From: Bugula neritina
Lineage: Eukaryota > Animalia > Bryozoa
DNA: 64,000 nucleotides
NCBI GenBank assembly: GCA_964035545.1
Contig: OZ037766.1
Location: forward strand, 15,738,722-15,802,721
Reading direction: 5' to 3'
Shown: piece by piece, positions 34,937 to 63,693 of the stretch
Layout: each line of letters begins with the position of its first letter
Position numbering within the stretch: the first letter of the stretch is position 1
Notes under the pieces: generated by a model
Databases searched by the model: none
Seen by the model: only the letters and a program-made list of their open reading frames with translations
What the model was told of the DNA's origin: nothing
Program-made: the position numbers and the translations under genes

Positions 34937-37867
34937 TCAGACAAAGCTTGGTGCAGAAGTGGTCTTGGTTGGACCATGGAAATCAGCAGGGAATGTGAAT
35001 TGTAAGTATGAAGGAAGTACAGGTTCAGAGTTGGTTGTGGTAAGAGCAAATGGATACGGAGGTGGCGGATATTTCTCTAAGAGAGGAGATGATGCAGAGG
35101 TGGTGGTTGGTTTAGGAGGATTTTGTGGTAGAATATCAGAGCTGGTGATTACTTTCACCACAATTTGCTGATATACTACAGCAAACTGATTGGTTTGATC
35201 AAGGAACCATTCGGATCTCTAGAAGAATGGGAATAGACGGGGTAAGAAATAGAATCGACTAGAATGAGTGAGTGAAACTAGAAAACAATGCAGTAGCTGA
35301 ATTTAAATAGAAAGTCTGCAACAAAAAATAAAAACTTGAAAATATAAGGTGTTGAGAATTGATTTGGGAAAAGTCTTGTGAGAAAATCAAAGGTAATAGA
35401 GAGTTTTGAATTTGAGAAAGGGAAAAATTGTTTTGGGTGAAATACCTTTGTAATTATATAGTAAAAAAAGTGTTGCAAAATTGAACAGACATGAGGTTGA
35501 ACAATCATGACATACTTTTCTCAGACGCTCCAAACTTCTCATCATAAGTTTTTCTGCTTCTTCATTATATAACTTTATGAATTCATGGAATGGCAGAGTA
35601 GGCTAAAAGTGAATGCATGGCTCTAAGTTATTACATGGCATGAGAACATGTGGAGTAGTAGAATGCCCATGCAAGCTAAATTATATAGTTTAAAGTAAAT
35701 TCAGCATTTTCTTAGCAAGCAACATAGTTTATGAGAAATTTTATGCTACCTTCATAGGTTTAGCATCTCCATTATCACATCTTGTCAATTGGAACACATC
35801 ATTCTCTACAGACCCTGTCTTTGTCAGATAAGCAAACTGATTTAAATTCTCTAGACCAAAAACAGAGGTGAGTGGAAAATAATTCAGCAAGAGCTCCACT
35901 ACTTCAACTGCTTTCTTGACTTTACACGGATCATTATTACTGTTTCTATCAAATAAAAAATTTACTAATTATAAAATAATTTCACATGTTTAGTGTACCC
36001 AACATGACTAAATGTGCAAACTATAACTATCGAACTATACTAAAATCTAGTCAAATAATTAATTTGCATGTAAACTTAAAAAAACTATAAATGTATTGCA
36101 AAAATATTTCTATATGTGGTACAAACATGTCTGTATAAATTTTTTAATATATGGCATATGGTGTAAATTTTTTTACTCAGATGCATGTTTTAACAAATAA
36201 ATTTATACATCACTAATTGAAAAGCTATAATGAATAGTTTTTATATTGAATCAAATCATAAGCAACAAAAAGATTACGTAAACTTGCTAACACTCACCCA
36301 AACAGGGATCCAGCAATAGACTTGGCCAAACTTTCAAATGGCAGGTTTTGACGCTTACATACACAAAAGGCGAGTCCCACCATCAATGTCAGGAGTTGTC
36401 TGACCGGTTTTGAGAGAGACATGAGATGTCTATAAAATTATAACTTAACTTAAATACCGAAAAAAATAGAAAATGCAAAGTCTAAATTTCAATAATAAAG
36501 AAAAAAGTTTTAGAAATTGCTTGGTGAAAAAAATATTTAAGTGTGTTATTGTGATGTATAATTGAAGCAAATGATGTAATAGTTGAAAATCTATGCATGT
36601 TAAACGATTTAAATAAAACAAAATTTAAGTTACAATACACAGAAACTAGAAATGATAACCATCTAACTTTGCATTGGACTATAATATTCAGTATAAAATT
36701 TACTTGCTGATTTTCTTTTTCTTTTTTGCCGGTTCCTTACTTTTTACAACGTTTAATAATTTCTTTTCAATTTCCTTTCCAATAAGGCCACCAGGTATGG
36801 AGAGAAAAAACTTCTGTAATGTAATGTATTGTCACCAACATACTATTTGCTAGCAGACTTACAATACAATATTGTACAGCATTTCTACTGTTCTGTTGCA
36901 GGTATTGTCAACATGTCTCATGATCATGTATAGTAAATGTAAAACTTGCCTGAATAATATTTTTAGCTGTAGTATTACCAGTCAGTTGAAGCGTCATGTA
37001 AAATGTAGCATGTGACTTAATACCAACTTGAGTTATTAATAGAATAAAAACAACGAGTTGCATGCAAATAACTATTTTACCTTCACCACAGAACATAGTG
37101 AGTGGATGGATGCAGTTTTAATATCAAAATCTTGTCCCGTTGAAAGATATTCTGACAGACGACGTACTTCACCTGCACTACCGGGTTGCCGGAATATTCC
37201 TACTTGTGCAATGCCAGTCAGGGCGATTTGAATGAAGATTTTCTGCAAGGTTATTTGCTTGGTTTTAGGCTGACCAATTAATTAGTCATGTATGTAGTAT
37301 ACTACTAAATATATACAAATCAATATACATGTGTTTTACAATTAAAATGGGTAGGTCTATGTTATTAATACCTACCAGAAGTATAGCTGGGATCTCATTG
37401 TTTTTGAAAGTGTGCTTTAAGGGCATTCCAAACTCCAACCTAAAGCAATATAAATACATTGATTCCTCAAATAATTTTTATACTTGCTACAATAAATATA
37501 TTATAACTTTGAAAAATTAAAATAGCAGTTATAATGATTAGAAAGACTATATAATATTATTTCTACATGCATGTACTGTGCCTTCATCTTATTCAGATGC
37601 AATGTAAAAAGTCTATAATTTTTTAATGTGGCATTTAGATAAAGTTAAATAAATGTTTTGTATTTTATTCCTAAAGCTATCTAACAAAAGTTAAATAAAA
37701 AATTCAAAAATAAGCTTTGTAGAAGCTATTGCTTATAATAGCTAAATACTATTATAAAATATGCTTTAGTTTATGGTATTAACCTACTTTTTGATAGTTG
37801 GTTCACCACTTTCATCAGCAGAACATCTTTGAGATTTTTTCGTAAAAAGTTTTCTTAGAAAACTCAT
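34937..37867 (-). CDS. RhoGAP-domain protein (~370 aa). Exons: 37867-37788, 37439-37376, 37242-37081, 36813-36704, 36429-36298, 35945-35750, 35602-35516, 35218-34937
   Basis: GT-AG, in-phase exons total 1113 nt. The product contains EFGMPLKHTFKNNEIPAILLKIF, arginine finger GIFRQPGSAGEVRRL, IHSLCSVVKKFFLSIPGGLI, and ESLAKSIAGSLF...VVELLLNYF. An acceptor site just before the ATG implies an additional upstream exon. Confidence 0.88.
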
Positions 37868-38840
37868 CACTAAAAGAAAAAAACCATGAATAACTCTATT
37901 TTAAAATTGAAATATAAAATTTACTATATAGTAATACAGGCTAATGAACTATAGCAATGGCACAGCTAAAGAATATAAGAAATTTAAACAATTAGAACAT
38001 ATAGTGCTTATGGTTTTGACAAGTAAGCACAAACAGAACAAAAGCCTTTTTAAAGAGTAAGACTCTGATGAAAAAGTTTGATTTTACTAACCTGATTATC
38101 TCAGAGAAATGTATGTCAAAGAGAGAGAGATAACTTCAATAAGTTATGTTGCAAAATAATACCAAAACTCAATAGCAATTGTATAGAACACGTCACAACA
38201 AAGTACGATACTGAGATAAGTAAACAATTTAAACACTAGATTCTATAATGTACAGAATAAAAGATAGAGGCATCCGTTTTCTGAGGCAGAGCGAATCAAA
38301 CTACATAGAGTCATAACATGATGTCTTTCTCATTGTCTGATTAACGCCACATAACTCATACATTCCTAGCTAGTAAAATTAGTAAATTACTAGTTATCAA
38401 AGTGATTGTTATAAATAAAAAACTTCCTAAATTAAAAAATTCATTAATGTAAACTTTATTGATTTTACTAACAGCTTGAGATTATTTTACATTGACATAA
38501 AACATGCTTAGATGAGGCGGTGCTTTTTGTAAAGCACAGCTTTCAAAACTCACATATTAGCATAATTTCTAAATAATATTTTCATAATCTTATTCATCAC
38601 CAAATTGTAAGATACAGACTATAGAGGGAAATCTAATGCATTATAGTGCACCTAAGCTACCCCTATGGTTTTGATGTGTGCAAGCTTTGAATACGTCAAA
38701 ATAAGCTTTTGGCTTATAATTAAGAAACATTTGTCTATATTGCTTACTCCTGTCAATCAGGTTAAATATGTAACTTTTTATTTTGAACAGAAACAGGATG
38801 CCAATGCACATTTTATAATTATATATTATTAAAGATAAAA

Positions 38841-39046
38841 ACACTCACGCCAGTTGATAGTAGTTATACCTGTGAGAAACCCTGATTGAAAGATTTTTTT
38901 GTTAAATCGGGCTAAGGACTCATTCATATGTAGAGCAATTATGACTGGATGTTCTTGCTAACATCACCAAGGGCATTTACTGAGGTTCGAACCCATGACT
39001 TTGTGTTTACTAAGCCAACTGCTTTAACTTTTAAACCACGGCTGCT
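38841..39046 (-). mobile_element. tRNA-derived SINE with Meta-like core, copy 2
   Basis: The minus strand starts AGCAGCCGTGGTTTAAAAGTT (A-box-like), has B-box GGTTCGAACC (38984-38993), then TTGGTGATGTTAGCAAGAACATCCAGTCATAATTGCTC. Confidence 0.82.
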
Positions 39047-39652
39047 GTGGTAAAGATAGAGAACTATGCACAGTGCAAAATAACTTGTGGCAGCCTTTAA
39101 CCAGGAAACAATGTGTTATATATTCATACAGATGAAATTTTTTAATCTTTGTAATTTTTATACTATTTTGCATTTGAAAGTCAATATAATATGTTGTTAC
39201 ATAGAACACATGTATTATTTTGTTATAGCTATTATAGTATTATAGTTTACTTTCTAAACTCAGTACTACACACATGCCTATAAGTCTGCCCCAAAAAAGC
39301 AACAACAGCTTATTAATTATCTATTTCTGCAACACGTTTTATTTTTTATTCAATTTATTGACGCATAAATCAAATTTTTAGTTTTTGAAGTGCAAAAGAT
39401 GTTTCCTTACACAGAAATTTATAAACAAGCAATGAAATCTTTAGAAAACATTGTTTCCGACCATGCATATATGATAAAAATAATTCAAAGGCATAATCTA
39501 ACTATTCTACAAAATTAATTAAACTAGGTACCCTTTTTGTCCAAGATGATCTTGATGTGCTTTTTTATGTACAGTTAAATTAATTGAAAGTCATATAATC
39601 TTTAAATGAATACATTTTGTAAAATAATTAGTTTTGTTCTTATAGATACAAA

Positions 39653-39720
39653 CAAAATAATTTAATAATAATATTTTATTGTTATATATAACAACAAAAT
39701 ATTATAATTAAATTATTTTG
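39653..39720. repeat. 68-bp AT-rich near-perfect palindrome
   Basis: Two 34-bp arms with no spacer and 2 mismatches (CAAAATAATTTAATAATAATATTTTATTGTTATA and its near reverse complement). Confidence 0.85.
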
Positions 39721-41051
39721 CTATAGCCATTTCTATAACCAATTATTGCAGAGCCATGTATATTATTAGCAATAGAAATTATATAGTTATAACAGTATAA
39801 TGATTTTTTCAAAGACATTTAATGATTAACTCAAAAACAGAGAAAATGTGATTGGTTCGTAAATGTGCAAATAGCAATTACAATGTTGAAGTAAGTTTTT
39901 TTTGGCTGAAACTATATTACATAATAACTATAGTCTGATATAAATTGTGCATGTGATCAAACATTATAATATATATTGACTCTATAGTAAAATATTATTC
40001 TGATTAAGCTGTTAACAAGTAGGATTTGTCTTACCTGAATAAGTAAATCTCAAATTGAACTAAATGACATACTTCACACTATGATGTGATACCCTAGTTA
40101 CCAACATCAGAAACAAATAAGAATATATGTATGTGTATTTAATTTTGTTTATTATAGACATTTAAAAAATGAGAAAACAACAAACTCTAGTGTCAACAAC
40201 TATCAATATAACAAAAAAGAACTGAGACAAAAACAATTCAACAAAATATAAATATCTTTAGTATAGGCCAGGCCAGGGAGTAAATTCAGTCCAGAATTCA
40301 TTATTTTGATTTTCTACAACATAGAAATATTGTACCTCAAAACAATTAAATAAAAGAGCTTCTTGTGGAGTTGTTCTATAAAGATACTAATGCATTTAGG
40401 TTTTATAAAATATAAACTATTCTTAATATTGAAACCACCAAAAAAGTACAATTTAGGGTATTTTAAGTGCCTATAATCATAATAAAATTTCAAACCATAT
40501 AAGGTAATGTCAATTATATACATTGGCTTTATAAAAATTAATAATATATACATTATATATTAATAATTTTTATAAAACAAAACTGCAAATTACTAATCAA
40601 CTGCAACAAAAAACATTTAGCTTAAGTACAAACATTGCGTATTAATTCATTCAAATGTGCTTGGTAAGTAAAATTTTAAGCTTTGAAAACAGTTTAATTC
40701 AATATTTTACACAGTTTGAAAGGCTAATAATTCTGCAACTTTCAGCAAAAACATATATATGCTAACTTTTGTTATGCAAGCTTATAATTGAGAAAGAGCA
40801 TTAACACTGGCTTTTAATAATCTCCTTAAAACATTCTTTACTTTAAGTAAAGCAACTAACCCGTAGAGTAGATGCTACTTTCTTAAGGCGGTTGTTTAAT
40901 TAGTAGAATGCAAGATTTATTTACTATAAACTGCAAAACCAAACAAAAAAGTGTTTTAAGAGTGCATATAGAGAGCTCACTATACCCCCTCTTAGGTTTT
41001 TAAACTCCATTTTACAGAACTTAGTTGAGGGCACCTACCAGGCGTTGCTAT

Positions 41052-41270
41052 TTAGTATCTTCCATAGTAAGATGAGAGTTTGGATGGGTAGAAGTTATAG
41101 CCCTTGCCAAAGTTGAAGTGTCTGTAGTTGTTGTATAGACCTCGGTTGTATAGACCTCGGTTGTAGTACTTGTAGTTAGATAGTCCGTATCCTCCATAGA
41201 GATAGTTGTTGTAGTAACTAGCTGAGGTAAGTGCTAGGCAGACAGCCAATAGGATTGCAATGACCTTCAT
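41052..41270 (-). CDS. Secreted Tyr/Asn/Gly-rich cationic peptide, copy A (72 aa)
   Basis: Signal peptide MKVIAILLAVCLALTSA followed by a 55-aa mature region with 16 Tyr. 5'-UTR intron at 41601-41286 and TATA box at 41687-41681. Paralog at 45594. Confidence 0.9.
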   Translation of the reverse strand: MKVIAILLAVCLALTSASYYNNYLYGGYGLSNYKYYNRGLYNRGLYNNYRHFNFGKGYNFYPSKLSSYYGRY

Positions 41271-41601
41271 GTTTTAGTTTAAGCTCTGTAGAAATATAGA
41301 ATTAAGAAATCATACAACCTAATATTTAATGCTACAGCTAATTGCGTGTATCAATAATTAGTCTATTACTTCATCTTAATATAAAAAAAAATTTTTAGTG
41401 ATAAAAGAATAAAATCTTTAATGGAAAACAATAAGTATAACATTTTGTTATTTCTCTATGACAGTTTTTATAGTTTATGAATAGTGAAAATGATGTTTAA
41501 GCATCTAGTTGAGTGTCAGAAATAATTTAACAGTTTACACAAACATATTATAGCTAGAATGATAAAACCAATCTAATATATAAAAGAATGAAGTATCTTA
41601 C

Positions 41602-41818
41602 TTTGAAGTTCAGGTAGATCACACTGTATAGTTGATGTTCAACAATTAAGTGAATAATTTATCCAATATTATTCTCTCTCTTTTATACTTTTTGAGTTAT
41701 TCCAATTGCCTTTGCATGACTTAGCTGTTTTGATTATAAATAATTTTTCATTAACTGCTATAGTGTATAAAATGAGGATAACACATTAATCATATAAATT
41801 ATATCTCAGATGACCATC
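41602..41818 (-). promoter_or_regulatory. Promoter and non-coding first exon of Tyr-rich peptide gene A
   Basis: Alignable to 44767-44989. Contains TATAAAA, donor AAA|GTAAGATAC and conserved ATGACTTAGC (41716-41725). Confidence 0.75.
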
Positions 41819-44766
41819 ATAGTGATTTCCTGTATTTTTTTTACAACATTTGCTTTAACCAAGATGTATATAGATCGAAATGTAATTGGTAATTGCAAGC
41901 TTGATATTTGTCACTTCCTAAATTTGACGAAACTAGTTTAAACAATGTAAACAAACTTTACAGCCAATGCACATTAGTGACTAGAAAAAGGAAATAAAGT
42001 AAGGATTATATAATGTAATATCATAGAATTATATACCAATATGATTTAGCTATACACTTTGGTTAAATATTACAAACCAAGCGATCTTAAGTACAATGCA
42101 ATTCAAAGCATTGTCAGGAATTTAAAATCAACAATTTTACCAATTTTTTATAAATATAAAGTTGTGTTTTGTTGTTCTGCTTTTGTTTCCTCTGTTTTTA
42201 AGCACTGTTTGTAGTTTTATTTTTACTTTTTGCAGCTTTAAGGCCATCAAGTTAGCAGACCATGCAGTTAATATTTAATACTATGTTTGATTAAAAATGG
42301 GTAATATGCAACAACTCCTTTTAAGTAAAAGATAACATACTTTTTCAATTCTTTCATAAATATACTAATTTTTGCATAAACATATAAATTTAATGTTTTA
42401 AGTATGTTTCAATTTATAAAGAATTACACGAAAAAAAACATAAATGCATGCATGCTAAAACGACCAATGATGTTTTTTGACAATAAATTCTGTATATTTT
42501 GCATTTAATGTTAGCAAAGTAGCTGTTAGATTTGTTAATAATTGCTGTGGTGTCATTGCATAATTTTTTTGTAATGTTATTTTACTCTCATTTCTGGTTA
42601 TAAAATTAGTATACTTGATTGTTGGCATATATGTTATTATATTTTGTCAGAATAAATAAATATATGGATATAAAATTGCCTCCTTAATTTTTAGATTTAA
42701 GGTTTCATTCCTCTGCAATATTTAATTTTTTGAGGATATGAAATAATAGATATATAATGTCACTTTTATGTCACATTTCTTACCTAGTATTTCAAAATAA
42801 GAAATTATGGAAAAGTTTTGAATAGTGTTTTTTATACAGTTTTATATTAAGTGAACTCAAGAATTAAATTACTTTATATAGCAAGGCTTACTTTTAAATA
42901 TTTTGACTTTTATTCATTGTTTTTTGAAGTATTAGCAAAACAAATTACATATATCTTTTTCAATATACATAAATTGTATATTTCAATTAATAATTTGCAA
43001 CAAAACAATAAACAAGAATCAGAATATTTTAAAAGCAAGTTTTGCTAAAAACAGGCAGCATTATTCAATTGTTTCAAATGAGATTTGCAAAAACTATATA
43101 TTGAACAGTTTCATCATTTTTCATTTTAGGAAATTAGAAGCTTCAGATAGGAAATGTGACATGAAAGTGACAATCTATGTTTTTTTATCTACAAAAGGAA
43201 AATATTGCAAAAAATTAACGCCTTTTAGATTTAGAAAGCAGGCAATTCTTTTGTTGCTAATAGCATACCAACAATCAAGCATACTATTTATATAACTTAT
43301 ATACATGCCTATTGGTAAAGTATAATTACAAACAAATAGCATTATTATAATGCAATATGAAGCAACAACAATAAAATTTGCATTGTAATAATCAACAAAT
43401 TTCCTAGCTATTTTGCCAGCATCTAATGCAAAATATCTTTTTAAATGCTTCAAGACAGTTGCTATAAGGCATGAAAAAATTCACAATTATTTGTTTAAAA
43501 ATTTGTAAATTGAAACAATATTATATGCGTGGAAAGAAGTAAAAATACTGTAGATATTATTTATATTTTTACGCAAAGTTGACACATTTAATACAAAGAT
43601 GTGGAAAAACCTTCTCGCAAAAGTTTTATATACTTAAATTAAGCTGTTGCCTTATTCAATCGTATGTAAACTTAAACTAGCTGATCTTTTAGATTTGACT
43701 AGTTATAAGAGATGTGAAAAGTAACCGAGCTTGATGTACCATTTGGCACTACTATAGAGTGATAAAAACAAACTATACCTACTAATAAATCAAAACTTTT
43801 TATCTTTATAGTTATCCAGCATATTTAGTTCCCAATAATTTTCTTTGCTATATATATATATTATGTATATTTTATTAATGAGAATATGTTTTAAATCATC
43901 ATGGTCTTATCAACTTGTAAAAAAATGAACCTCTTCTCATCTAATCAAACAGTGCTTATGATAATACAGTTATTCTTATTGAAATATATTTTTAATGCTT
44001 CAATTCAATTTTTAATTGAAATTTAATTTTCAATATTTTGCTACCATATACTCCATTATATCATATAGTAGCTACCTTATTGTATATAGGCTATATATAT
44101 ATATTGAGAACCTATAAACACAGAAGTTGTTAAAACTTTCCTCCACCAGCTTATTTCTAGGCTTGGTGATAAGAATTAAACAATTTAAAATTATTATTGT
44201 TATATTAAATGTAGATATGCATAAGTTTGTTTAGATATAATAGTAATAATCACAAACATCAAAATACAAGGAATGAAGTTAGGTGATTACTATAAAAACA
44301 GTTTTTGTTGTAATATTTAGTATAGAATGCCACTAAAAGCTTTGAGTACACTTGCAAATGTACTCAACCTATTTTTCTTTGCATACAGATTACAGTTTTT
44401 TTATAGGCATTCTAGTTGCACGTCTTAAAGAAAATATACAATGACATTTGGCCAAAAAAATATTCCATTGAAACTTGTTAACAAAGATTTAATTATATAA
44501 CCATTTTTTTATCAATTTCCAACTACAATTTGACTACCATATATTATGCATATAATTCTATGAATTATAACATGGGTATATTGATAATAGCTTCTCCTAC
44601 CAAAATTCTCAAACTTCTCATCTGCGTTGTTAATGATTCAATAACTTACCATTCTCTGATAGCCAGGCAGAAATTTAATTATGCAATTGAAATTTTTTCA
44701 TTTCCATACTCCTTGCTTAAATAATGAAAAGTGTTGAATAACTTGAAATAAAGAGGAAATCAATAA

Positions 44767-44989
44767 GATGGCCATCTGAGATGTAATTTAGATGATTGAT
44801 GTGTTATCCTCATGTTATACACTATATCAACTAATGAGAAATTGATTATAATTAAAACAGCTAAGTCATGCCTAGGACAAAAGCAAGGAATAACTCAAAA
44901 AGTATATAAAGAGAGAATTTGTTTGAATAAATCATTCACTTGTTGAACTGCATCAGCTGTATAACAGTGTGTTCTACCTGGGCTCAAAA
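44767..44989 (+). promoter_or_regulatory. Promoter and non-coding first exon of Tyr-rich peptide gene B
   Basis: TATATAAA at 44903-44910, donor GT at 44990, acceptor CAG ending at 45578, and conserved GCTAAGTCAT (44860-44869). Confidence 0.75.
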
Positions 44990-45593
44990 GTAAGATACTT
45001 TGTTATTTTATAGTATAGATTATAATATAGTACTTTAATTTTCTTAAAATTATCAACGTGTATTTTAATAAAAAAATTCATAGACATCACTTGTATTACA
45101 AACTGTTTGTTTTATTGAAAAGTATAATTGCAAAATATAATATTACCATATGTTATGCTTTTGAAACTTATTCAGTGTGTTGTTTTTGGACTGAGAAATA
45201 CATATAATATTGAATTTGACAAATCCCAAATGCCAAAGACATATTAATATTTTAATCTTAAAACTAATTGCTTATAAGTATCTTATTTACTGTCAATGAA
45301 ATACAAAAGTTATAAAACCTTTTACTATCTAGATCAAGGATTGTCGCAAAGTGTTATCATGTACCGGTACTGCTCTTTTTATGCTTTTATTCCGTTTTCA
45401 TTGAAAATTATATCTTTTTGCTAAATTTTGATAAAATAGGAATTGTAATTTTTTGATTTTAAGGTTTAAATTTGATCTATTTTATAAAAATTATGTTTTG
45501 TGAAAAAAAATAGCTTTTATGTTCTTTTCTAATTTTTAATTGTTTGCCATTTATATAGCAATTTGCTTCTTTTTACAGAATTTAAATTCAAAC

Positions 45594-45812
45594 ATGAAGG
45601 TCATTGCAATCCTATTGGCTGTCTGCCTAGCACTTACCTCAGCTAGTTACTACAACAACTATCTCTATGGAGGATACGGACTATCTAACTACAAGTACTA
45701 CAACCGAGGTCTATACAACCGAGGTCTATACAACAACTACAGACACTTCAACTTTGGCAAGGGCTATAATTTATACCCATCCAAACTCTCATCTTACTAT
45801 GGAAGATACTAA
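45594..45812 (+). CDS. Secreted Tyr/Asn/Gly-rich cationic peptide, copy B (72 aa)
   Basis: 217/219 nt identical to copy A, with one F>L change. The true start is ATG 45594; the ORF-track extension to 45540 is mostly intronic. Confidence 0.9.
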   Translation: MKVIAILLAVCLALTSASYYNNYLYGGYGLSNYKYYNRGLYNRGLYNNYRHFNFGKGYNLYPSKLSSYYGRY

Positions 45813-48046
45813 ATAGTAACGCCTGGTAGGTGTCCTTAGCTAAGTTATATTATAAACCAATAGCTTTTCAAGTAATTTCTCAGTAGTTTACTTTGTAACA
45901 TTAATTTGCCTTGTAGTTCATAGTGAATAAATGCTGCATATTACTTTTACTGTTTTAAGAATTAGTTTTTAAAATTAGTTTTTCTACGTAGTTCAGTCAA
46001 AAATGGTTCAGCTCAAAAAAACTTTTGAGCTTGTAAAAATATTTAATAAAAAGTAGCATCTTTTTGAAGCATAGCTCTATAATTATATGTATTATTATAA
46101 CCATGTAAAATATTGAACACATATGCAGCAGCTTCTATAAAGCTAAACACCAATGTCTTGGTTTTCTGTTAAGCAGCTGCTGGGTAATGCAGTTTTGGCT
46201 TCAAAAGCAATATCTAATATATTTGATTGAAATTATTTTTTAACAATATTGACTGCTAATAACTATATTTTGGGAAATAGCCTAAATTGTGCTTAGTTTT
46301 TTTATGTATTGTTAAATATCTAAAATAGGTCATATTTTATGAAACTTATATACAAATTTTTTTTATTAATAACCATTATAGAAAAACTCCACACCGAACT
46401 TTCTTCTTTTATGTTCTTTTATGTTACATTGCAGAACACTGAAAAGATGAACTTTGGACCGATTTCACCGCTTGACCTGCCCCACTTGAAAACCCTATTT
46501 TGTTAAACTTTTCTTTATGTCTACAATTTGCCATTTTATTTTGTTTGTTATAATTATAAATATGTTGACATTAGCTATTATTAAAAAATAGTCTCGATGC
46601 AAATTCTTAGGCCTACTTGTCTTTGCTATTATAAACAGGATACTACATCATAATACGGAGTAACAACATTTAGTGTTAAGCTTATTGATTTGAAGATAAC
46701 TGATAGGGAGTTAAGCTCATAACCTCCGAGTAATCTAAAACTGCATAATTATATTTTACTTTAAATTGTAACCATGTTACAGCGATTGCAGAAGCAAGCT
46801 TTCCATTAATAGTTATCGCACTACAAGTGAGGCTAGCAATATGTTTTAAAAACATAACTCCTAGCTGTACATTTACAATTAAAGCTTTATGTAGCCAAAA
46901 TTTTGTGGTTGCAGTGTACTATATAATATAATTTGTAGTGCTTACACAGTAAAGGTTGATGTTCAAGTGTGGATCTTCACTCGTGTATCCTTTTATTGTT
47001 TACACTTGACCTACACCGAGTTTACAGCATCTGACTCTATACACTGGTTTAGCGAAACCAAGATCAATAGCAAATTCACTTAAAAAAAACAATTACAAAA
47101 AATTATAGCCTACAAAACAAATGCTTTCGCATGCTGTAAACCTAAGATGCATGCTTCATAACGAATATAAATTTTCAGCAAGCTAGAAAAGACAAAATAT
47201 ATAATTAAATGCACCAACGGTTACTGTAGAAAATAATTATTTTGCTATAACAAAGCCCCATCTGTTCACCAGCATGTCTTTTGCTAAATGGTTAAATTGA
47301 TAGCAGCTCTCACTGCTGTGCAGGCACAGCTTGTCTGCAAAACGCTAAAGGAACAATTTTGTATTATACCTTATTAAACACATGATCTTTAATCAACATG
47401 ATCAATTACACAGTCTCTAATTCCCTCCCTTCCCCTAGCACATAAAAATATTTCAAATTTTTCACTATTGAGATGTGTGGCGCTATGGGCAATAGTTCAA
47501 ACTCATATATAATATGTGTTTGAAACATGAAGCAGCAGCTACTTTGTGTAATTAGCACAGATTTAGGTCTAATCTTTTAATTTTACTAATAGAATTTTAA
47601 TTGTAATATAATCAACTTGAATCTGATGCATGTTTTAGAATGAAAACAACAACAACTCAAAGCAGAATTAAACTTTAGCTAAATTATTATTTTTTTTAAT
47701 ATTAGGAAAATGTTTTTGATAATACACAAACAGATGAAAATAGATGCTAAGAACTATTTTAGCACATCTATAACAATTGAGAAATTTTGTCATGATTAAA
47801 AACTATAGATTTATGAAAACGTATACTTGCATCATATATGTCACATCAAAATTTACATTATAGACTGTTGGCCAGGTTTGATAGAAACTGCTCTTAGACC
47901 AGAAACACTCCTGAGTAGAAGTCGTATAGGCAAAAGATTTACACCATTATTTCTTAGACAGTGTTTTGCACATTTGAACACAAAGCTGAAAGTAACCAAA
48001 GTTGGGCTCACTATGTTGGACATAAGCTGCTATCTAACATACTAGG

Positions 48047-49336
48047 TAGGGGTAACCGGGGCACAACGGTCATAGGGGTACAAAAAGCCGGCCAAATTGT
48101 GAGAGAACTTATTGACTTAGAGTTGCGATTTGTTTTTCATAAAAAGGTATTGACATAAATATTCAGCCATTGTAGTTTCAACACTTGCAGAACATAGGTG
48201 TTGAAAAGGCGAGTGAAAAACTGTTTTTACCTACCTTTTGCAAAATTTTTAAGATGTCGTTAAAGCTTTATAACTTTTTACACTCAAAGGCAACGAGCCT
48301 AGATTTTACTGATATTGTTGCCATTGCTTGTCTCTACATTGCTTAACTAGTACAACAGCAAACTCTAAAATAAATTTTCCTTGAGGCAAATTTATGTTCA
48401 ATTTGGCCATCCGGGGCACAATGGGCCACCTGATTATTGTACCCTGATCACTGTTATTAATTTGTTAGCCCAAAAAGTTGGTTGAAATGTTACTAAAATT
48501 TATAGATATAGCCATTTCTGACCTTTTTGTAAAACATCAAAGACATTATGGTAAGACTACAAAACTACAAGGTGAAGCTCCCCTAATATATACATCTGGT
48601 GAGGTTAAAGCTATGTTTTTTTATACATAATACAAAACACTCTGCTATTGCTACTAGTAGATAGTCATGATATTCATTATACATTATATCATAGAGGAAA
48701 TATACATGTATTTGACTAAAATAAATTGTGATTTGCTCATTCGCTCCCCCCCCTCTCCCTTCCGTACTGCAGCCACAAACCGAAGCCATGCACCTTAGCT
48801 ACAGTTCATAGAAAAAACAGTTCACTCAAAATTTTGTAGCACATGTTACTAAAGTTTTATTTCTGATAAAAGTTCCTCTGAAGTGTAAATAAAAAACATT
48901 TTTAGTTCTAAACAGTAATGATAATGGCACTGGAGAACCGAGTGATGTGCGTTTGAATTTTCTTTCCCCTGCTATCCGTGGTGGCACAAACTGTACAGCT
49001 AAAACATGAATTTTGCTTTAGATCTGAAAGAATAATTTTATTTATTTGTAATATTAAATAAATAAAGATCAGATGCAACAAAATCCGCAAAGTTTCAATA
49101 TATTTGTTGTGTCCCGCCCAGCTGCCCATTGTACCCCCGTCATGAAAATTTTATTATTCTGAAAGTTGCGAGAGAAATAGAAACAACAATCTGATACCTG
49201 TAATAGACAACAGATGCAGCATTAAGACTAGAGATTATTGAACTAGTAACTTGAAAAACAGACGAATGAGAGCAGAAAATGCAAAATTCAGCCCGTTGTG
49301 CCCCCCCCCCCCCCCCCCCCCCCCCCGTTACCCCTA
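48047..49336 (-). mobile_element. Non-autonomous TA-flanked TIR element, copy 2 (inverted relative to copy 1)
   Basis: Termini are TAGGGGTAACCGGGGCACAACG and CGTTGTG-C26-GTTACCCCTA. The body aligns to the reverse complement of 9983-11305. Confidence 0.9.
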
Positions 49337-49960
49337 CATAGCTGCTAATGTTTGTCAGACTTTTATTTCCTATACATTGCTATCATTTTGAAGAAACACA
49401 AGTTCATTGTTAGTGAGTGAATTGTTTCAAAACTGAAAGATAAAGAATGGAAATATCTTGGGCAAATATGTTGCCAATGTTTATGAAAACATCTGTCCAA
49501 CTAAAGATAAAATTTATAATGCCAGAGCTGAATAACTAAATTTAACACTGCAAAAATCAGTATGCATAGTCCCTCCTGTCAAAATGACACAGGTAATAAT
49601 GGCGCAGCTAATAATAGCACAAGAGGTAAAAATGGCATGCTTTCAATATTAGAGTTTAGGGTGGAATTGAGTTTTTGTGATGGGTTTGAGTTTGGGAAAA
49701 TTTATTATCAGCGTACCATTTTAGATAATCTGCAATTTTGTTTATGCTACAAGTTATAAAATAAATTCCTACCATATCAAAATATTTTGAATAGCATTAT
49801 ATTGGGTATTACATAACAGAGCTCAGACTTCTAATAAAAATAATTGGTCATAACTAACAAAGGTGTAAGATAGAGATGAAAGTTGATGGTTGTAAAAAGA
49901 TATAACTAGTATTTAGTTATCAAGCATTTATTAGATCTTATTACATTCCACTATGAGGTT

Positions 49961-53124
<3,164 letters not shown>

Positions 53125-53300
53125 TTTATATGTGACTGTTACCAGTGTCTGTTTGAGGTTGAAGACCAATTGTGTTGCAAGTCTCTAGAAGTTCTGGCGA
53201 TCTGTATAAATTATCATAATATACTTAGTTCTCAAAACCAAAATTGGCTGTTGTTTTGAGTAAATGGTTCCTCTACTCCAAACCTTTTTATTTATATAAG

Positions 53301-53496
53301 CTCACTCACACAAGTTGATAGTCACTATTCCTGTGAGAAAACCTCTGATGGAAGGGCTTTTTGTTAAACCGGGCTAAAGACTTATTGAGATAAGTCACAG
53401 GAGTTTTTCCTAACATCACCAATGGCTTTTGTCTGGGCACAGACCCATGATCCATGCTTACTAGGCAGACGCTCTAACCCCCTGACCAAAACTGCT
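53301..53496 (-). mobile_element. tRNA-derived SINE with Meta-like core, copy 3 (internal deletion)
   Basis: Shares TTTTTGTTAAA(C/T)CGGGCTAA and CATCACCAA with the other copies. The minus strand begins AGCAGTTTTGGTCAGGGGGTTAGAGCGTCTGCCTAGTAA. Confidence 0.75.
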
Positions 53497-54249
53497 TCCA
53501 AATCTTTTTATTTAAATATATACTTTCAAAAGTAACATAAATCAAACTGATAGATTAATAATCTATAATATAATTTTGTAGTTTATAGGTATTTGAAGTT
53601 TAGGCTTTGGATACATATGCCGCTTACAGTTTTTCGAAGCATATGCTCTTCTGTCTACAGCACTATAATGAATGAGACAAGCAGCAAAACTTTTGTAAAT
53701 TTATAGCACCTTCTTGTCAGAGTTACTCAACTGAACTATCAAATATTATGGAAACAAAAATCCATTAAAAATTAACAATGAATTACAAATACGCTACAAT
53801 TACCTGTTACAGTGCTCACTTTAAGAAAGATTGATGCTGAATTAGACTATAAAGTTTCTGTTGTGATGATATCCTGCACAGTCAAATTTACTATCTATAT
53901 TCTTTCCAAATGAATGACCAACAACTAAACTTGAGAAGCACTTTGATAACAAGCAGTATTATAGGCAATGAAATTAGGCTAGTGTCGAACTAAATGAACT
54001 TGGACAATTATGATTAATGATTATGAATAAATCTTGCATAGCCAACACTAATGGGGTCAACTGCTAGTAAAAATCATAAGGTGATCTTCATAGAATATTT
54101 CTAGGCATATGAAACAATAACTCTACTTTTTAGTCACTTCTTGCTTTTGCAATGATTGATCTTTTCTAAGCAAGTGTTACCTAGATGCCTCTTTAATGTT
54201 GTTTTTAATTGGAATTCAGCATGCGTCTAGTAAAGTGCCTTCACCATTT

Positions 54250-55290
<1,041 letters not shown>

Positions 55291-56055
55291 TGTTTCATAG
55301 TCCATCGTCATAGCATATTAATAGCCCCTAAACAAAACAATAAATTCCTACAACTGCCAGCAAAAGCCACAATCAATGAATCAAGTGTATTGCAAAAGCC
55401 TAAGACAACAAATCTGCCAGAATATTTCTGTTCCCTTATTTGGAATTACTTGGGGCTGGTGGTGCAATTTGGGTGACCAATGGGATCTGGAACACATCAT
55501 TTTTGTTTATTTGTTTTTTGTGTATTATTCTGCTGCTGTTGGAAAGCATTGGTTATCCTGATCAGTTGCACTTAGTAGAGCCAAAGAGCAAGTTATACTA
55601 CTTATAATTTTACATTAAACAAGATACATATTGCTAACTATTGAAACCTAAGAGCAGAAGCTGTATTATCAAGTTATCAGAGAAGCGCTAAAGGTTTGTC
55701 TACTATTAATTTTTCTATCATTTATTGTCCAAATGCTGTAATATCAATACATTTAGCTTATATTATACGAAGTGGTTTATAGCTGACATTATTTTTAGTG
55801 AAGTATTATGCAGTAATATTTTGCTTACTTTAATAATTTTTATGTGTGTTATTTCCTTACATTTCTTATTTTCTTGTACTTTATTTAGCCTTATATTGTG
55901 TGTATTTTATTTAGATTTCACGGTGTAGCTTTGTGAGCAAAAGTGTTATAAGTTGGAATAAAATACTAATAACTACACTCACAAGACATCAGTTGAATTC
56001 CTAAACCTACTCTGATAAGCTTGCGGTTGCTAGCAGACCTAACAGAACTGCTACA

Positions 56056-56643: not shown

Positions 56644-59393
56644 TTAGGTTACAGTTTTGAAAAATCTGTCCCCTCGTGTGCAAGCTATGCTTTGCATTAT
56701 AATAGGTAAAGCACAAATAATTACTCCGTATCCCAAGAAAAATGTTGTCATAACTCCAATACCTAACATTTCCACAAAGTGACCAATGATGGGCAGGAAT
56801 GAGATATCAGCTATACCAGAAGCAATTGAAGGTACCATAACTCCAGTAGCGGTAACAGTTATGTAGCGATTAGTCCAAGCAACTCCTGAAGGAAAGGTTG
56901 GACCAATAAAAAGTCCCAAACAGCATACAAAGACCCACAAGATGATGTCATTACCACTAAAGAAAAACAAGACTACAGCACTAACAAAACCTCCAACTCC
57001 TTCAATAAAAATGATATACTTCATATGAATCAAATTACTTCCAACAAAACCCAAAATCCGTCCTATTGTAAGAAATATCCAGTAGTTTGTCAAAAAGTTT
57101 TCAGCTTTACTTGGACTAAAGCAAGCTTGATTTCTTGCGTAAGAGTAAAGATATTTAGAACCAATTCTTTCTCCACTAACTGCTACATAGGCCCAGAGAA
57201 AAAGTAATACATAAAGGAAAAAAGCAAACATTGGATCACCAGGTGCACAAGTATTAAAGTTGAACATGTCTTTAATTGATTTTTCACTATTTCTGTTTGC
57301 ATCGTTATCTGAAACTTTTTCTTGCTTGCTTTTGCGAAAATAAAAAAAAATCCACAAACAACCTACTAAAGTAACAATTCCTGAAATAATGAAAAAGCCA
57401 TATTTGAAATTGGAAGAAGTATTGGTGAGAGTGCTTGCAGGTAGGTTTGTGGTGATATTAGATAACATTGAGTCAGTGCAATTTATGATATCAAATGTAG
57501 AGTTAGTGAAAGGTGGAGGTGCGACTTCACAGACAGAGCCGGTAATTGTCTTCTCATCTTTCGGAAGCTGCTTACTAATGAAAGGTTTCACAATTTGAGG
57601 GACGATAAAGCCACCGACCCCATAACCAACATGAACACTGTGAAGAGGTCCACTGGCTTTTTCTTTCCAAATATCCATGATAATTGTTTGACCAGCTGTA
57701 ACAGAAAGTGATGTTCAATTTGTTATGCATAATATTAGTGTAATAGCAAAATAATTATTTAAAGATAATTAATACTTAAAAACCTTGGATTAATAAGTAG
57801 TTATAAGTACTATAGTTGTACACCCAGCAATGGGAATTAGTAGCTATAACTGTAAAAAATTGATTGCATAGTTTCTAAAAATTGAGAACAGCATGCTGCA
57901 ATTTACCTAATTTAATAAATATAGGTACGGATGCATAATTGTATTTAAGTTGTAAGTTAGGATTACTATATGCATACAGTTTTTTTACAATGTACTGAGT
58001 CAGTGATTTTGCAATTTTTTTACACACCATCATAGCATTTTTCAAGAAATCTACTTTTTACACCCAATGCAAATAACCATTGTAAAAGCGAAACATAAAG
58101 GCCAAAACATATTATAAAAATATTACTTAATGCTAGGCTTCTACCCTCTTCTGCGGCAACCACTTCAAGTTTTAAAAAATATTGGAAAATTTATTGATGG
58201 TACTATAAAATGAAAATATAACCAATTAACTATACATAATTTCATGAAATTTTATTGAATGCTTACCGATATTTAGAAGAATATCTGCCCAACCAAGTAT
58301 AAAATTTATGACGCCAAAGCCAACAACGTAATGGCAGAATGGAATAGCCAAGTTTAGTCCGGCTGAAATCATCACACATACTACTAGGATAAGCTCAACT
58401 TTGTGGTGAAGCCTTTCAACAATGTATCCACCGCCTGGAAATGTAGAGCAATAACCACATACTTTTTAAAAAAATATTTGTGCTAATTTTAATTTATCCT
58501 AATTTCTGAATATATACAGTAGCTATGTACAATTCAGTATACTGCAGGTATATAACCACTGTTTTACAGTATAAAAGTTAATGTCTTGCTATGTGGTGTA
58601 AAATGGCAGCCTAAATTTATAAATTGTAATTTTCTAACATGTCTATATTATTAAAAGGAATTTCTATGGGACATTACATAAAATATTTTTAGTCTTCAAG
58701 TTGTTAATGCAAATTGAGATGTAAAGTTTTACCCAGAATACATCCACATAAGCCACCAACACCTTTCATAGATATAGCTTGAGACAGAGCACCATAGTTT
58801 GAGTTTGTTAGGGACATCAGATCTTGAAAGGTTGCTCCATTTACTTCTGACCACAAACCCTTCGAAACGGTAGGATTATTGAAATTTATTCATAAAACCA
58901 TTATAGTGAGTATAATTATAATGGGTAATTTTACTTACATAACTTTAATTTTCAAAGGATATTCCTGATGCAGTTAAACCATAATTTAATTAGAAATAAA
59001 AATCTTACCATACTAAACCAAGTCAGGATTAAAGAAAGTGTCTTCAATATTTTATGTAGTGTTGAGAGTTGCGTTTCCTCAATTGAGTCATCAGTTGGTT
59101 CATTATCCTCTGACTTTTCTTCAGATTGTAGAATTGGTGCCTATTTAAATTAATATTTATTATGTAACACAAGCAATGAGCGTTGAGTAATTTACAAATC
59201 TGTTGTTGAATTAATTGGCTTGACCTAGAGTACCAGAGAAAACTCTATCACATTTTCAAATGTTTTAAGTTATTGCGGTTTAGTTTTGACAATTTATAAG
59301 TCGCAATACACATTTTCTCTGCACACATGAATTAATCATTACTATACCATACCATACCTTTTCCTCCATCTCTTTTAGTTTGTAGGACTCCAT
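56644..59393 (-). CDS. MFSD4/NaGLT1-like major facilitator superfamily transporter copy B, intact (~504 aa). Exons: 59393-59358, 59140-59009, 58859-58733, 58434-58267, 57695-56644
   Basis: GT-AG, in-phase exons total 1515 nt. Multi-TM pattern with NGATFQDL, GGYIVERL, IWKEKASGPLHSVHVGYGVGGFIVPQIVKPF, long N-glycosylated loop, YWIFLTIGR and GPTFPSGVAW. Confidence 0.9.
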
Positions 59394-60564: not shown

Positions 60565-61470
60565 GTTGTGTTTGTTTGACAAGGGTCTGTCTCTGTTGAC
60601 AGTGCATAGCATTTTCAGTGCTGGTGTCTCGCACGTCTAGCCATAAGACTTTTAGCGTTGTTATCTGAGTCAAATGTCTGTCCGGTATGAAGGTTTTTCC
60701 TCCATTTAGCACAATTATAGGAAAGTGTGGTAAAGCTGCTGAGATTTGTATGAAAGTATTTGAGATCTGGCTTTAAAACATTTTTAGACTTTAGATAAGG
60801 TCTTTCTGTTTGACGGGATTCTTTCTGACAATACGTCATGAAGCAAAATGTGTGGAATGCGGCGCTTTGGCATGCAGTTTAAGTGACCAGCCCAACGAAG
60901 GTGGAGAAATTTTAGCTTTGGGGATAGAGAACCTGAACCTGTGAGTTGAAAAACATCTTTTTTTGTCATCTTGCTTTTCCAGCTTTTGCCAAGAATTTAC
61001 CTTAACTTCTGGTGTGAAACACACTGAGTTTTGATTCTTGGTGCCAATAAGTTGCCCAAGTCTCTGATCCATAAAGAAGAATGCTGAGAACCACGCTTCA
61101 TAGACACTAATTTTGGTGCAGATGCTAAGATGTCTGTTCTTCCAGACTAGGTTGTTTAGGCACCAAAAAACACTAGCAGCCTTTCCCAATCTAATTAATA
61201 TTTCTTGGTCAACTGTGGTGTTCTTAGTGAGAGTAGAACCAAGATAAGTAAATTTATCAACATCCTCAAGCTGATTCTGATTGATGGTAAATGTATGGGT
61301 CCTTGGAGATTGTGTGAGGGTTACAGTTTTCTTCACACTTATGGTTAGTCCAAAAAGATTACATGCATCACTAAAGCTGTTTAAACAGTTTTGAAGCTGT
61401 TCAGGGGATGACGCACAAAGTGCAGCATCATCAGCATATAGTAACTCATGAAGAACAAACTTTTGGACCT
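60565..61470 (-). mobile_element. RTE-type non-LTR retrotransposon, 3' part of RT (degenerate)
   Basis: Minus strand reads KVQKFVLHELLYADDAALCASSPEQLQ...FGLTISVKKT...VDKFTYLGSTL...RLGKAASVF...LRWAGHLNCMPKRRIP, with frameshifts. Confidence 0.9.
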
Positions 61471-63693
61471 ACAACCTACAACCAACTTGAGGATACTGTT
61501 GAAAAGGCATCACTTCCTGAGCATACTTTTCTGTTGGGAGACATGAGTGCTAGGGTGGGAACTGGCTACATGTCTTGGCCTGAATACCTTAAAAACGTTG
61601 GCGTTGGCAAAATAAATGAGAATAGAGTCAGTTTACTTCATTTAGTACACACCAGCAACTTATGACCTAACATTAATGTTTGCTCAAAATCAATTGAAAT
61701 TTACTATACATGGTGTTTTTATGTGTTGGTTTTAACTACGCATAACAGAAAAGGCTGGGAGAGGATTCCCCAACATTAAAGCACAGGTCATTGTCATATG
61801 CACTTAATATTCTATATGTGCGGACCGTTACGAAAAACGTAACCAAAACTAGCTGAATAATTAGGGAAAAACATAGGAAATGAAGCAAAATTAAAAAAAC
61901 CTTTGATTATTTAAGTGTATTTATTGGTGTTTTACTACCATGTTCATTACCAGCTAAATTGTAAAAAAATAGCCAAAAACTGAAGATATCCAGTGTGTAC
62001 TAAATTAAGTGAAATGACCCAATAGTCTGCGACTTTCATAATTCTGCAGTAGAAACTATTTATTCATCACAAACAGTTTCTTTCCTGGCAAACAGTGCAG
62101 AAAATTATCTTGGCACCATCTTCGCTCCAAGACTTGGCACCAACTTGACTCTGTGATTACTAGCCAAAACAGCAACTGGAAGTGCTCAATACACGTACCT
62201 ACCACAGTGCCGACTGTGACACTGATCACAGCCTTGTTGTGTCATCGATGGTATTACAAGCTAGGCCGTATAATTGCCAGTGTAGACAATCTATGAAGAT
62301 AGACGTGAGTAAAGCAGAATTACCTGAGCTTCGACAAAAATACTGGGATGCATTAAATACTAAGCTGGTAAGTTTGTGGAATTAGACACCGATGTTGAAA
62401 GTTGCTGGAACTACCTACAAAGTGTCATACACCAGTCCGCAATTGATACTTTTGGACGTCGAAGATGTTTAGATCCTGACTGGTATAGAGAATCACGTGA
62501 CACCATCGAGCCTATCTTTGAAAGGAAGCATGCAGCAATGCTTAAAATGAAATCAAGACTTTCTCGTTTTTCACTGGCTGAATATAGTGCTGCCTGAGCT
62601 TTGGCTCACAAAAACATTTCGTGAAAGTGTGCAGGTATTCTGGGGTTCATTATGTTCTAATATTGAAATAGCTAGAGACTCTGAAAACATGAAAAAAATG
62701 TTTACTGCCATCAAAACAGTCACAGGGCCTTCTACTCAAACCTGCAGCATACTGAAGGACAAAAATGACTCATTCATAGAAAACAATTCCCAAAAGCTTA
62801 ACTGCTGAGTAGAGCATTAAATTGAGCTATATGGGGCCGCAGGCATAGCTGATCATAATTATATTAATAAAATCTCAGACTTACCAGTCCTAGAACATTT
62901 GAATATGCCCTCAGATCTTTCTGAAATTATTACCGTTATTTAGAACCTTCGATCCGGTAAAGCTTCTGGCAGTGATAAAATTCCAGCAAAACTTTTAGAA
63001 GCTGGCTCAGGCCCACTAGCTAAATATCTACATTATCTGATGAATAAATGCTGGCTTTCTCAATCTGTATCACAAAGATTTAAAGATGCAAAAATCACTA
63101 CCCTGTACAGGAACAAAGGCGGAAGAGGTGACTGCAATAACTACCGTGGCATTTAATTATTGAGTGTCACTAGCAAAGTATTTGCAAAAATACTTCTCAA
63201 GCGCTTCCAACAAGTAGCTGATACAATTTACCCCGAGTCACAATGTGGGATCTGGGCACAATGATCAACAACAGACATGATCTTTGCTGTTCGCCAACTG
63301 ATGAAGAAGTCCTGTGAGCAGAGAAGACCACTTTTCTTGGCGTTTGTAGACCTTACAAAGGCATTTGATCTTGTGAATCAAAAAGCTCTGTTTACAGTAC
63401 TGGCCAAGGCTGGTTGTCTACGAACCCTGGTTGCCTTGATTAGGTCATCCCATAATGGCATGTTTGCCAAAGTTCAGTTTGACAGCCATTTGTCTGAGGC
63501 TTTTCCTATCAGAAAGGGTGTTAAGCTGGGATGCATGCTGGCTCCTACACTTTGTAGCATATATTTCTCATATGTTTTTAAAACAGTGCATGCTGACTTG
63601 AATGCAGATGCTGGTGTGTCTCTGCTTTCTCGAGATGATGGCAACTATTTCAACTTGGCACGATTTTGAGCCCGAACCAAGGTCCAAAAGTTT
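61471..63693 (+). mobile_element. Same RTE-type LINE, inverted 5' part (APE endonuclease to RT N-terminal half), degenerate
   Basis: YNQLEDTV...LLGDMSARVG, ITNSFF...SWHHLRSKTWHQLDSVI, ADCDTDHSLV, GDCNNYRGI, LFLAFVDLTKAFDLV, GVKLGCMLAPTL...NYFNLARF*ARTKVQKF. Multiple stops and frameshifts. Confidence 0.9.
61663..62062. mobile_element. ~400-bp unclassified insertion nested in the LINE endonuclease region
   Basis: The LINE frame ...HTSNL|FITNSFF is split exactly here, with TTA on both sides. Confidence 0.7.

Follow-up and report, generated by a model that had tools for sequence, protein, structure and literature searches.

Within a 64,000-nucleotide stretch of the genome of the bryozoan Bugula neritina (GenBank assembly GCA_964035545.1, contig OZ037766.1, positions 15,738,722 to 15,802,721 of the forward strand), which we call the window and number from its first base, two intact open reading frames (ORFs) of 72 codons lie head to head and encode nearly the same small, basic, tyrosine-rich peptide behind a signal peptide. 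We found that this pair is an outlying member of a gene family that counts at least 31 copies in the same genome, that the encoded peptide is under purifying selection, and that the two coding sequences (CDSs) have been homogenised by gene conversion between inverted copies, independently in two lineages, while the flanks of the pair evolve freely. The family is lineage-restricted and undescribed in the literature we searched; the kind of molecule it represents, small Tyr-rich secreted material or defence peptides, is already known. The coding part of each gene is a single exon:

41052-41270, minus strand: coding exon of the minus gene, 72 codons and a stop, for a 17-residue signal peptide and a 55-residue mature chain.
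45594-45812, plus strand: coding exon of the plus gene, from the ATG at 45594 to the stop at 45812, 72 codons and a stop.

The two proteins are separated by a single residue, Phe in the minus gene and Leu in the plus gene. Both begin with a hydrophobic leader of 17 residues that ends in Thr-Ser-Ala, followed by a 55-residue mature chain of 6.8 kDa with an isoelectric point (pI) of 9.66. An earlier reading of the letters by themselves, referred to here as the sequence-only reading, had described two head-to-head frames of this layout and a chain with 16 Tyr, 9 Asn, 8 Gly, 7 Arg/Lys and no Asp, Glu or Cys; the frames are present as claimed and our recomputation returns the same figures, with the basic residues divided into 4 Arg and 3 Lys, and 3 Phe in addition. 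Expressed as mole fractions, the mature chain is 29% Tyr, 16% Asn, 15% Gly and 13% Arg plus Lys, and Tyr and Phe together make up 35% of it. The tandem YNRGL repeat of that reading is borne out as an exact 15-nucleotide tandem duplication, which occurs in one, two or three copies among the paralogues. Its remark that Tyr often sits near cationic residues is accurate as a count, since a Tyr lies within two residues of 6 of the 7 Arg/Lys, but about 5 of 7 would be expected from 29% Tyr alone, so the statement carries no information beyond composition. The mature chain contains no dibasic processing sites and is predicted to be disordered, with an AlphaFold confidence score (predicted local distance difference test, pLDDT) below 50 for residues 24-72 and a helix only in the signal peptide. 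Thr-rich ORFs of 49 residues lie in another frame inside both coding exons (41048-41197, minus strand, and 45667-45816, plus strand); they are a by-product of the run of TAC and AAC codons and not genes.

The pair is far beyond chance ORFs, because eight close paralogues keep the frame, with a mean ratio of non-synonymous to synonymous substitution rates (dN/dS) of 0.22 in the subfamily, and a syntenic orthologous pair is present in another assembly; the proposal that these are real secreted-peptide genes is upheld. The pair does not form a system standing alone but is part of a larger family. A six-frame search, in which the minus gene recovered itself at 100%, placed all of the family genes, at least 31, on contig C2, at 2.37-2.44 Mb, at 3.23-3.35 Mb, in the pair at 15.78 Mb and as one gene at 19.86 Mb, so that the pair lies 12 Mb from the two clusters. 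The entire CDS is contained in one exon in all 31 genes, and they have in common a signal peptide starting MKVIAILLAVCLAL, identical in both genes of the pair. Each of the subfamilies into which the mature parts fall is Tyr-rich and basic (family pI 9.7-12), and acidic residues and Cys are very rare: among nine tabulated genes Asp and Glu occur in none and one Cys occurs in L031, and L007 and L008 carry single Asp or Glu substitutions. At the protein level, the pair is 92-96% identical to six cluster genes on C2, and identical proteins are encoded by several copies in other subfamilies (L010, L011 and L012). The pair has derived residues of its own, a Ser at mature position 1 and an Arg-His-Phe, which are also found in its orthologues in the published B. 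neritina draft. Across the 31 genes (L001-L031) the first ~35 nucleotides of the CDS are nearly invariant, third codon positions included, and the 15 nucleotides of 5' untranslated region (5'-UTR) just before the ATG are only ~53% alike; this invariant start across subfamilies suggests conversion or a constraint at the nucleotide level.

The history of the pair can be read from its flanks, for which the following features are needed:

39960-47591, no strand assigned: the whole duplicated two-gene unit, inverted and collinear with C2:3232279-3240537, which holds the head-to-head genes L006 and L007.
41018-41294, no strand assigned: left arm of an inverted repeat, 277 nucleotides, comprising the CDS with 34 nucleotides of 3' flank and 24 of 5' flank; putative gene-conversion tract.
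45570-45846, no strand assigned: right arm of the inverted repeat, the counterpart of 41018-41294.

The pair is an inverted copy of the ~8-kb two-gene unit at 3.23 Mb, to which this 7.6-kb unit aligns with a non-coding identity of 73-80% (blastn). The 277-nucleotide arms are 96% complementary and have sharp edges, and the arms formed by promoter and exon 1 are ~80% complementary; neither gene of the pair aligns to the other beyond the 277-nucleotide arms. Similarity to L007 is seen in the intron (86%) and 3' flank (70%) of the minus gene; the plus gene resembles L006 and L004 in the corresponding parts (71-75%), with 71-73% for its intron, which does not align to that of the minus gene. A recent inverted duplication in place, considered as the cause of the near-identity of the two genes, is therefore rejected, since introns and 3' flanks match different genes of the 3.23 Mb unit and not each other. 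The CDSs themselves are 99% identical and share five derived sites relative to six other members of the subfamily. A patchy inverted similarity of 67-81% is also present in the spacer, between 42494-42934 and 42988-43436 with its centre near 42965; sequence like that of 42494-43436 occurs between other family gene pairs too, and the similarity probably survives from the original palindromic duplication.

The published draft (GCA_010799875.2) allowed an orthologous comparison, since its contig VXIV02003143.1 (L047) is collinear with window positions 36996-53723. The syntenic genes are annotated there as the hypothetical proteins EB796_020869 and EB796_020868, so that the description of the pair as unannotated is correct for the present assembly but not for the draft. 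Identity in non-coding DNA between the window and this locus is 82-86%, and 83% at a second orthologous locus (L043 against L007). Because orthologous non-coding DNA is only ~83% identical, the sequences indicate that the two genomes come from close relatives of different lineages, perhaps cryptic species of one complex. Both loci exist in the draft as well, so the unit was duplicated before these lineages split. At alignment columns 53, 60, 81 and 135, both genes agree within each genome and differ between the window genome and the draft, and no site groups the genes by orthology, which is the ground for placing gene conversion in both lineages. The plus gene differs from its draft orthologue by 3 non-synonymous and 4 synonymous substitutions. 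The draft orthologue of the minus gene (EB796_020868, VXIV02003143.1:2471-2692) lacks one nucleotide of a CC run in its first YNRGL repeat; it may be a very recent pseudogene, or else the loss is an assembly error, as its position in that run and the open frame beyond it would allow.

Flanking non-coding DNA has diverged (~0.2-0.3) two to three times as much as the synonymous sites (0.075-0.11). Codon use in the pair is strongly biased, with 78% TAC, 88% AAC and a G+C content at third codon positions (GC3) of 0.52, against 39% TAC, 45% AAC and a GC3 of 0.27-0.43 in five neighbouring ORFs, in a region of 28% G+C. The codon bias and the low synonymous divergence fit high expression, gene conversion or both. 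Taken with the purifying selection and the identical copies (L010, L011 and L012), these sequence patterns speak for dosage and bulk production and against diversification.

The gene structure upstream of the ATG was modelled by comparison only, from an alignment of 1.5 kb upstream of the eight closest paralogues. Its elements in the pair are the following:

41286-41601, minus strand: predicted 5'-UTR intron of the minus gene, 316 nucleotides, GTAAGA...TTCTACAG, with the acceptor 15 nucleotides before the ATG (comparative).
~41602-41655, minus strand: predicted non-coding exon 1 of the minus gene, a block conserved in 8 paralogues.
41681-41687, minus strand: TATA box of the minus gene, conserved in 8 paralogues.
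41688-41842, minus strand: conserved upstream promoter block of the minus gene, defined by sequence comparison.
44746-44989, plus strand: promoter block, TATA box and exon 1 of the plus gene, conserved in 8 paralogues.
44903-44910, plus strand: TATA box of the plus gene, conserved in 8 paralogues.
~44935-44989, plus strand: predicted non-coding exon 1 of the plus gene, conserved in 8 paralogues.
44990-45578, plus strand: predicted 5'-UTR intron of the plus gene, 589 nucleotides, GTAAGA...TTTTTACAG (comparative).

In the alignment, a conserved promoter block of ~200 nucleotides is followed by the TATA box (GTATAAAAGAGAGA) and by a putative non-coding exon 1 of ~55 nucleotides that ends CAAA|GTAAGA. 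The intron bodies vary freely, from 316 to 589 nucleotides, and the acceptor TTTTTACAG is conserved exactly 15 nucleotides 5' of the ATG in all eight close paralogues. TATA box, donor and acceptor are thus kept in 8 of 8 subfamily genes, a comparison that supports the TATA boxes and 5'-UTR introns previously proposed for both genes; the transcription start of the minus gene is placed by TATA spacing alone. The promoter block of the minus gene is ~80% identical to that of the plus gene and 77-83% identical to those of other subfamily members. It is detectable only within the pair's subfamily and in none of the others, so a promoter common to the whole family was rejected. A bidirectional promoter shared by the pair was rejected as well, because the two TATA boxes are ~3.2 kb apart. 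Most other subfamilies have a pyrimidine tract and an AG (CAG or TAG) before the ATG.

Searches for relatives returned the family and little else. The peptide of the pair matched no Pfam family at E values up to 10 and no entry in a sequence search of the PDB. A word search found only Bugula proteins and contigs of Bugula-associated metagenomes, the public matches being hypothetical proteins of GCA_010799875.2 and Bugula-associated metagenome contigs of the Joint Genome Institute (JGI). A profile of 27 family members, run against 1.84 billion representative proteins, gave 16 matches; these were family members, plus one spurious arthropod cuticle protein reached through signal-peptide-like repeats, and no characterised family was among them. 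The matches include four more distant members on metagenome contigs of the European Nucleotide Archive (ENA), and in the three whose contigs were read the acceptor lies 8-14 nucleotides before the ATG. These three (L040, L041 and L042), one of which is Trp-rich, are divergent members; their contigs are eukaryotic and AT-rich, the samples are unrelated, and other bryozoans are the probable source. A scan of metagenome loci gave a single spurious match, on the word HFNFGKGY, and neighbours in the feature space of the ESM Atlas score at most 0.81 and serve as leads only. As far as these sequence searches reach, the family appears to have no detectable relatives outside itself. A neuropeptide precursor was also considered and rejected, since the chain has no dibasic sites and the peptide is missing from the B. 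neritina neuropeptide survey. In the literature searched we found no described bryozoan Tyr-rich protein and no paper on the glue or cuticle proteins of Bugula-type animals.

Three known systems come closest. The mussel adhesive proteins MFP-3f and MFP-3s (PF04202) are likewise secreted, of 5-7.5 kDa, basic, rich in Tyr, Gly, Asn and Arg, disordered, and encoded by a highly polymorphic multigene set, and for MFP-3f a mass of 6 kDa and a pI of 8-10 are reported (PMC9999432). The likeness to MFP-3 in size, charge and composition is therefore genuine, and it is compositional, as the sequence-only reading itself had held: PF04202 does not match the peptide of the pair, and in a comparison with 27 of the 31 family genes its best value was E = 0.35, for one gene. 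The Bugula family has a gene structure and a signal peptide of its own. Conversion of Tyr to 3,4-dihydroxyphenylalanine (DOPA), at 10-20 mol%, by a co-secreted catechol oxidase characterises the Mfp-3 proteins; DOPA and hydroxyarginine are established on the mussel side only, and the Bugula genome offers little tyrosinase. The tick cement protein tick-GRP77 forms simple coacervates in salt, driven by Arg and aromatic residues at regular intervals, and these age to an adhesive gel that is free of DOPA (PMC11794139). This protein is also small, secreted and disordered, and by analogy it is our favoured working model for a mechanism that would not need DOPA. It differs in having ~9% aromatic residues, 26% Gly and acidic residues, against 35% Tyr plus Phe and no acidic residue in Bugula, and it is not homologous to the Bugula peptide. 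Finally, the NLP-27 to NLP-31 and CNC peptides of Caenorhabditis elegans are small, secreted, Gly/Tyr-rich and cationic, and their clustered genes duplicate and diverge quickly (PMC2453101). Neither the profile search nor Pfam indicates homology with them, and the nematode genes are positively selected and induced by infection, whereas the Bugula subfamily is under purifying selection and homogenised.

The enzymes available for cross-linking bear on how such a peptide could be cured. The one locus in the genome that matched tyrosinase (PF00264), at C7:2.09 Mb, aligns to model positions 15-66 of 214; no more than its CuA half can be recognised, Pfam does not recognise the adjoining exons, and by eye the histidines expected in the exon that should hold CuB are lost. 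In this tyrosinase-like gene (C7:2083000-2092999, minus strand, ~5200-9100), an upstream exon is pacifastin-like and Cys-rich (E = 5e-5, below the Pfam cut-off). A search for haemocyanin-type phenoloxidase, run without a positive control, gave no match in the genome. Animal haem peroxidases gave 87 exon matches in eight regions, with tandem clusters at C9:8.06-8.14 Mb, C3:1.19-1.24 Mb and C7:9.24-9.28 Mb, and laccase-like multicopper oxidase genes form tandem clusters at C3:22.32-22.39 Mb and C5:7.13-7.17 Mb. The inventory is permissive, and makes Tyr coupling of the peroxidase or laccase type more plausible than DOPA made by tyrosinase; the DOPA part of the sequence-only reading is weakened accordingly.

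We tentatively propose, at somewhat less than an even chance, that the genes encode a bulk-secreted, disordered, sticker-rich peptide, condensed by cation-pi and pi-pi contacts and built into cuticle or attachment cement through oxidative cross-links. We infer that the peptide is secreted, expressed in bulk, condensed and cross-linked, and likewise the tissue in question. A secretory epithelium would make the peptide in bulk as a material protein. The signal peptide would be removed and the 55-residue chain would stay whole, because it lacks dibasic processing sites. Condensation would then proceed through cation-pi contacts of Tyr and Phe with Arg and Lys together with pi-pi contacts, with Gly, Asn and Ser serving as spacers, and oxidative coupling of Tyr would fix the peptide in the organic outer wall (cuticle) of the colony or in the attachment cement. 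The oxidant would more likely be a haem peroxidase or a laccase-like oxidase than a tyrosinase; dityrosine-type cross-links would therefore be expected rather than DOPA of the mussel type, which is probably absent from the cross-linking. The material reading is supported by the set of at least 31 genes with a single coding exon, a nearly invariant signal peptide and mature parts that are Tyr-rich, basic and all but free of acidic residues and Cys. It also draws on the identical copies, the purifying selection, the codon bias with the low synonymous divergence, the predicted disorder, the likeness to MFP-3f in physical parameters (PMC9999432), the DOPA-free precedent of the tick protein (PMC11794139) and the abundance of haem peroxidase and laccase-like genes beside one partial tyrosinase-like match.

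Several observations weigh against this proposal. A conserved signal peptide before variable mature parts, in clustered genes with TATA promoters, is what inducible defence peptides might show as well, and the background for the codon bias consists of the five neighbouring ORFs only. The exact proteins of the pair have no record in the contig collection. The one public run that holds the stretch covers genes and spacer alike and carries heterozygous variants, so it is DNA. It is the only public run to match, and neither RNA nor protein evidence for the pair was found; the JGI and Logan contigs with paralogues are likewise genomic and not cDNA. The presence of enzymes in the genome is permissive evidence that does not link the peptides to cuticle, glue or oxidase, and a six-frame search can miss tyrosinase exons, which leaves room for DOPA.

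Among the alternatives, an antimicrobial or other defence peptide, one that the epidermis would release onto the surface of the colony, in a family diversified by duplication as in the C. elegans NLP and CNC peptides, is unlikely without being negligible. The products are small and cationic and come from clustered genes, with an invariant signal peptide and mature parts that vary greatly from one subfamily to another; the nlp-29 cluster shows that Gly/Tyr-rich peptides can come from clustered genes (PMC2453101), and a nematode-specific peptide family is among the feature-space neighbours mentioned above. Selection within the subfamily is nevertheless purifying, and its copies are homogenised or identical, which fits dosage and not diversification; the chain has no amphipathic or Cys-stabilised design, its 29% Tyr is unusual among antimicrobial peptides, and it has no homology to NLP/CNC or fungus-induced peptides. 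The adhesive or quinone-tanning peptide of mussel type, in which a co-secreted tyrosinase would hydroxylate Tyr to DOPA, we consider improbable. Size, pI and the Tyr/Gly/Asn/Arg composition are very close to those of MFP-3f (PMC9999432), and the animal is a strong fouler whose larvae must be glued under water; against this stand the single, partial tyrosinase match, in which the CuB histidines look lost by eye, the missing phenoloxidase match in a search run without a positive control, and the failure of the Mfp-3 profile to recognise the peptide.

Molluscs have basic Gly/Tyr-rich shell-matrix proteins, and by that analogy the peptide might belong to the organic matrix of the lightly calcified skeleton. 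A small, secreted, basic and Gly/Tyr-rich peptide in an animal that calcifies would suit such a role, but it lacks any stretch that is acidic or rich in phospho-Ser, as well as any known feature for binding calcium, and we regard this as very unlikely. That the genes are silent or decaying copies with no present function is hardly credible. No RNA was found, and the draft orthologue of the minus gene carries its deletion; the ORF, TATA box and splice signals of each gene are intact, however, and a dN/dS of 0.22 accompanies a peptide conserved across lineages ~17% apart in non-coding DNA. The deletion, in a CC run with an open frame downstream, may itself be an artefact of assembly.

Elsewhere in the window, very long microsatellites of (CA)n and (TG)n, with a switch between strands, occupy 52347-55313 and account for the extremes of GC skew (-0.28 and +0.36). 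Tandem paralogues of a multi-pass membrane protein lie on the minus strand at 49961-50985 and 56644-57678, and the first copy appears to be missing from the syntenic stretch of the draft. ORF fragments at 60836-61336 and 63277-63669 resemble retrotransposon reverse transcriptase, as judged by eye only.

The contribution of the pair is a clean orthologous comparison, from which the peptide emerges as conserved by selection and homogenised by gene conversion. Bugula-type bryozoans are major foulers of ships and aquaculture, and a large, conserved and probably highly expressed family of very small, secreted Tyr/Arg-rich peptides is the obvious candidate for their glue or cuticle protein. Such peptides are simple to synthesise, and would offer antifouling research and the design of wet adhesives free of DOPA a concrete target. 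We consider it possible, though on balance doubtful, that this family, the pair included, supplies the protein of a glue or cuticle that is specific to bryozoans and works under water without DOPA; 6-10 kDa "all-sticker" peptides of Tyr and Arg would then coacervate in seawater and be cured by peroxidase or laccase. If true, one of the world's main fouling animals would have a class of marine bioadhesive with no relation to the systems of mussels, tubeworms or barnacles.

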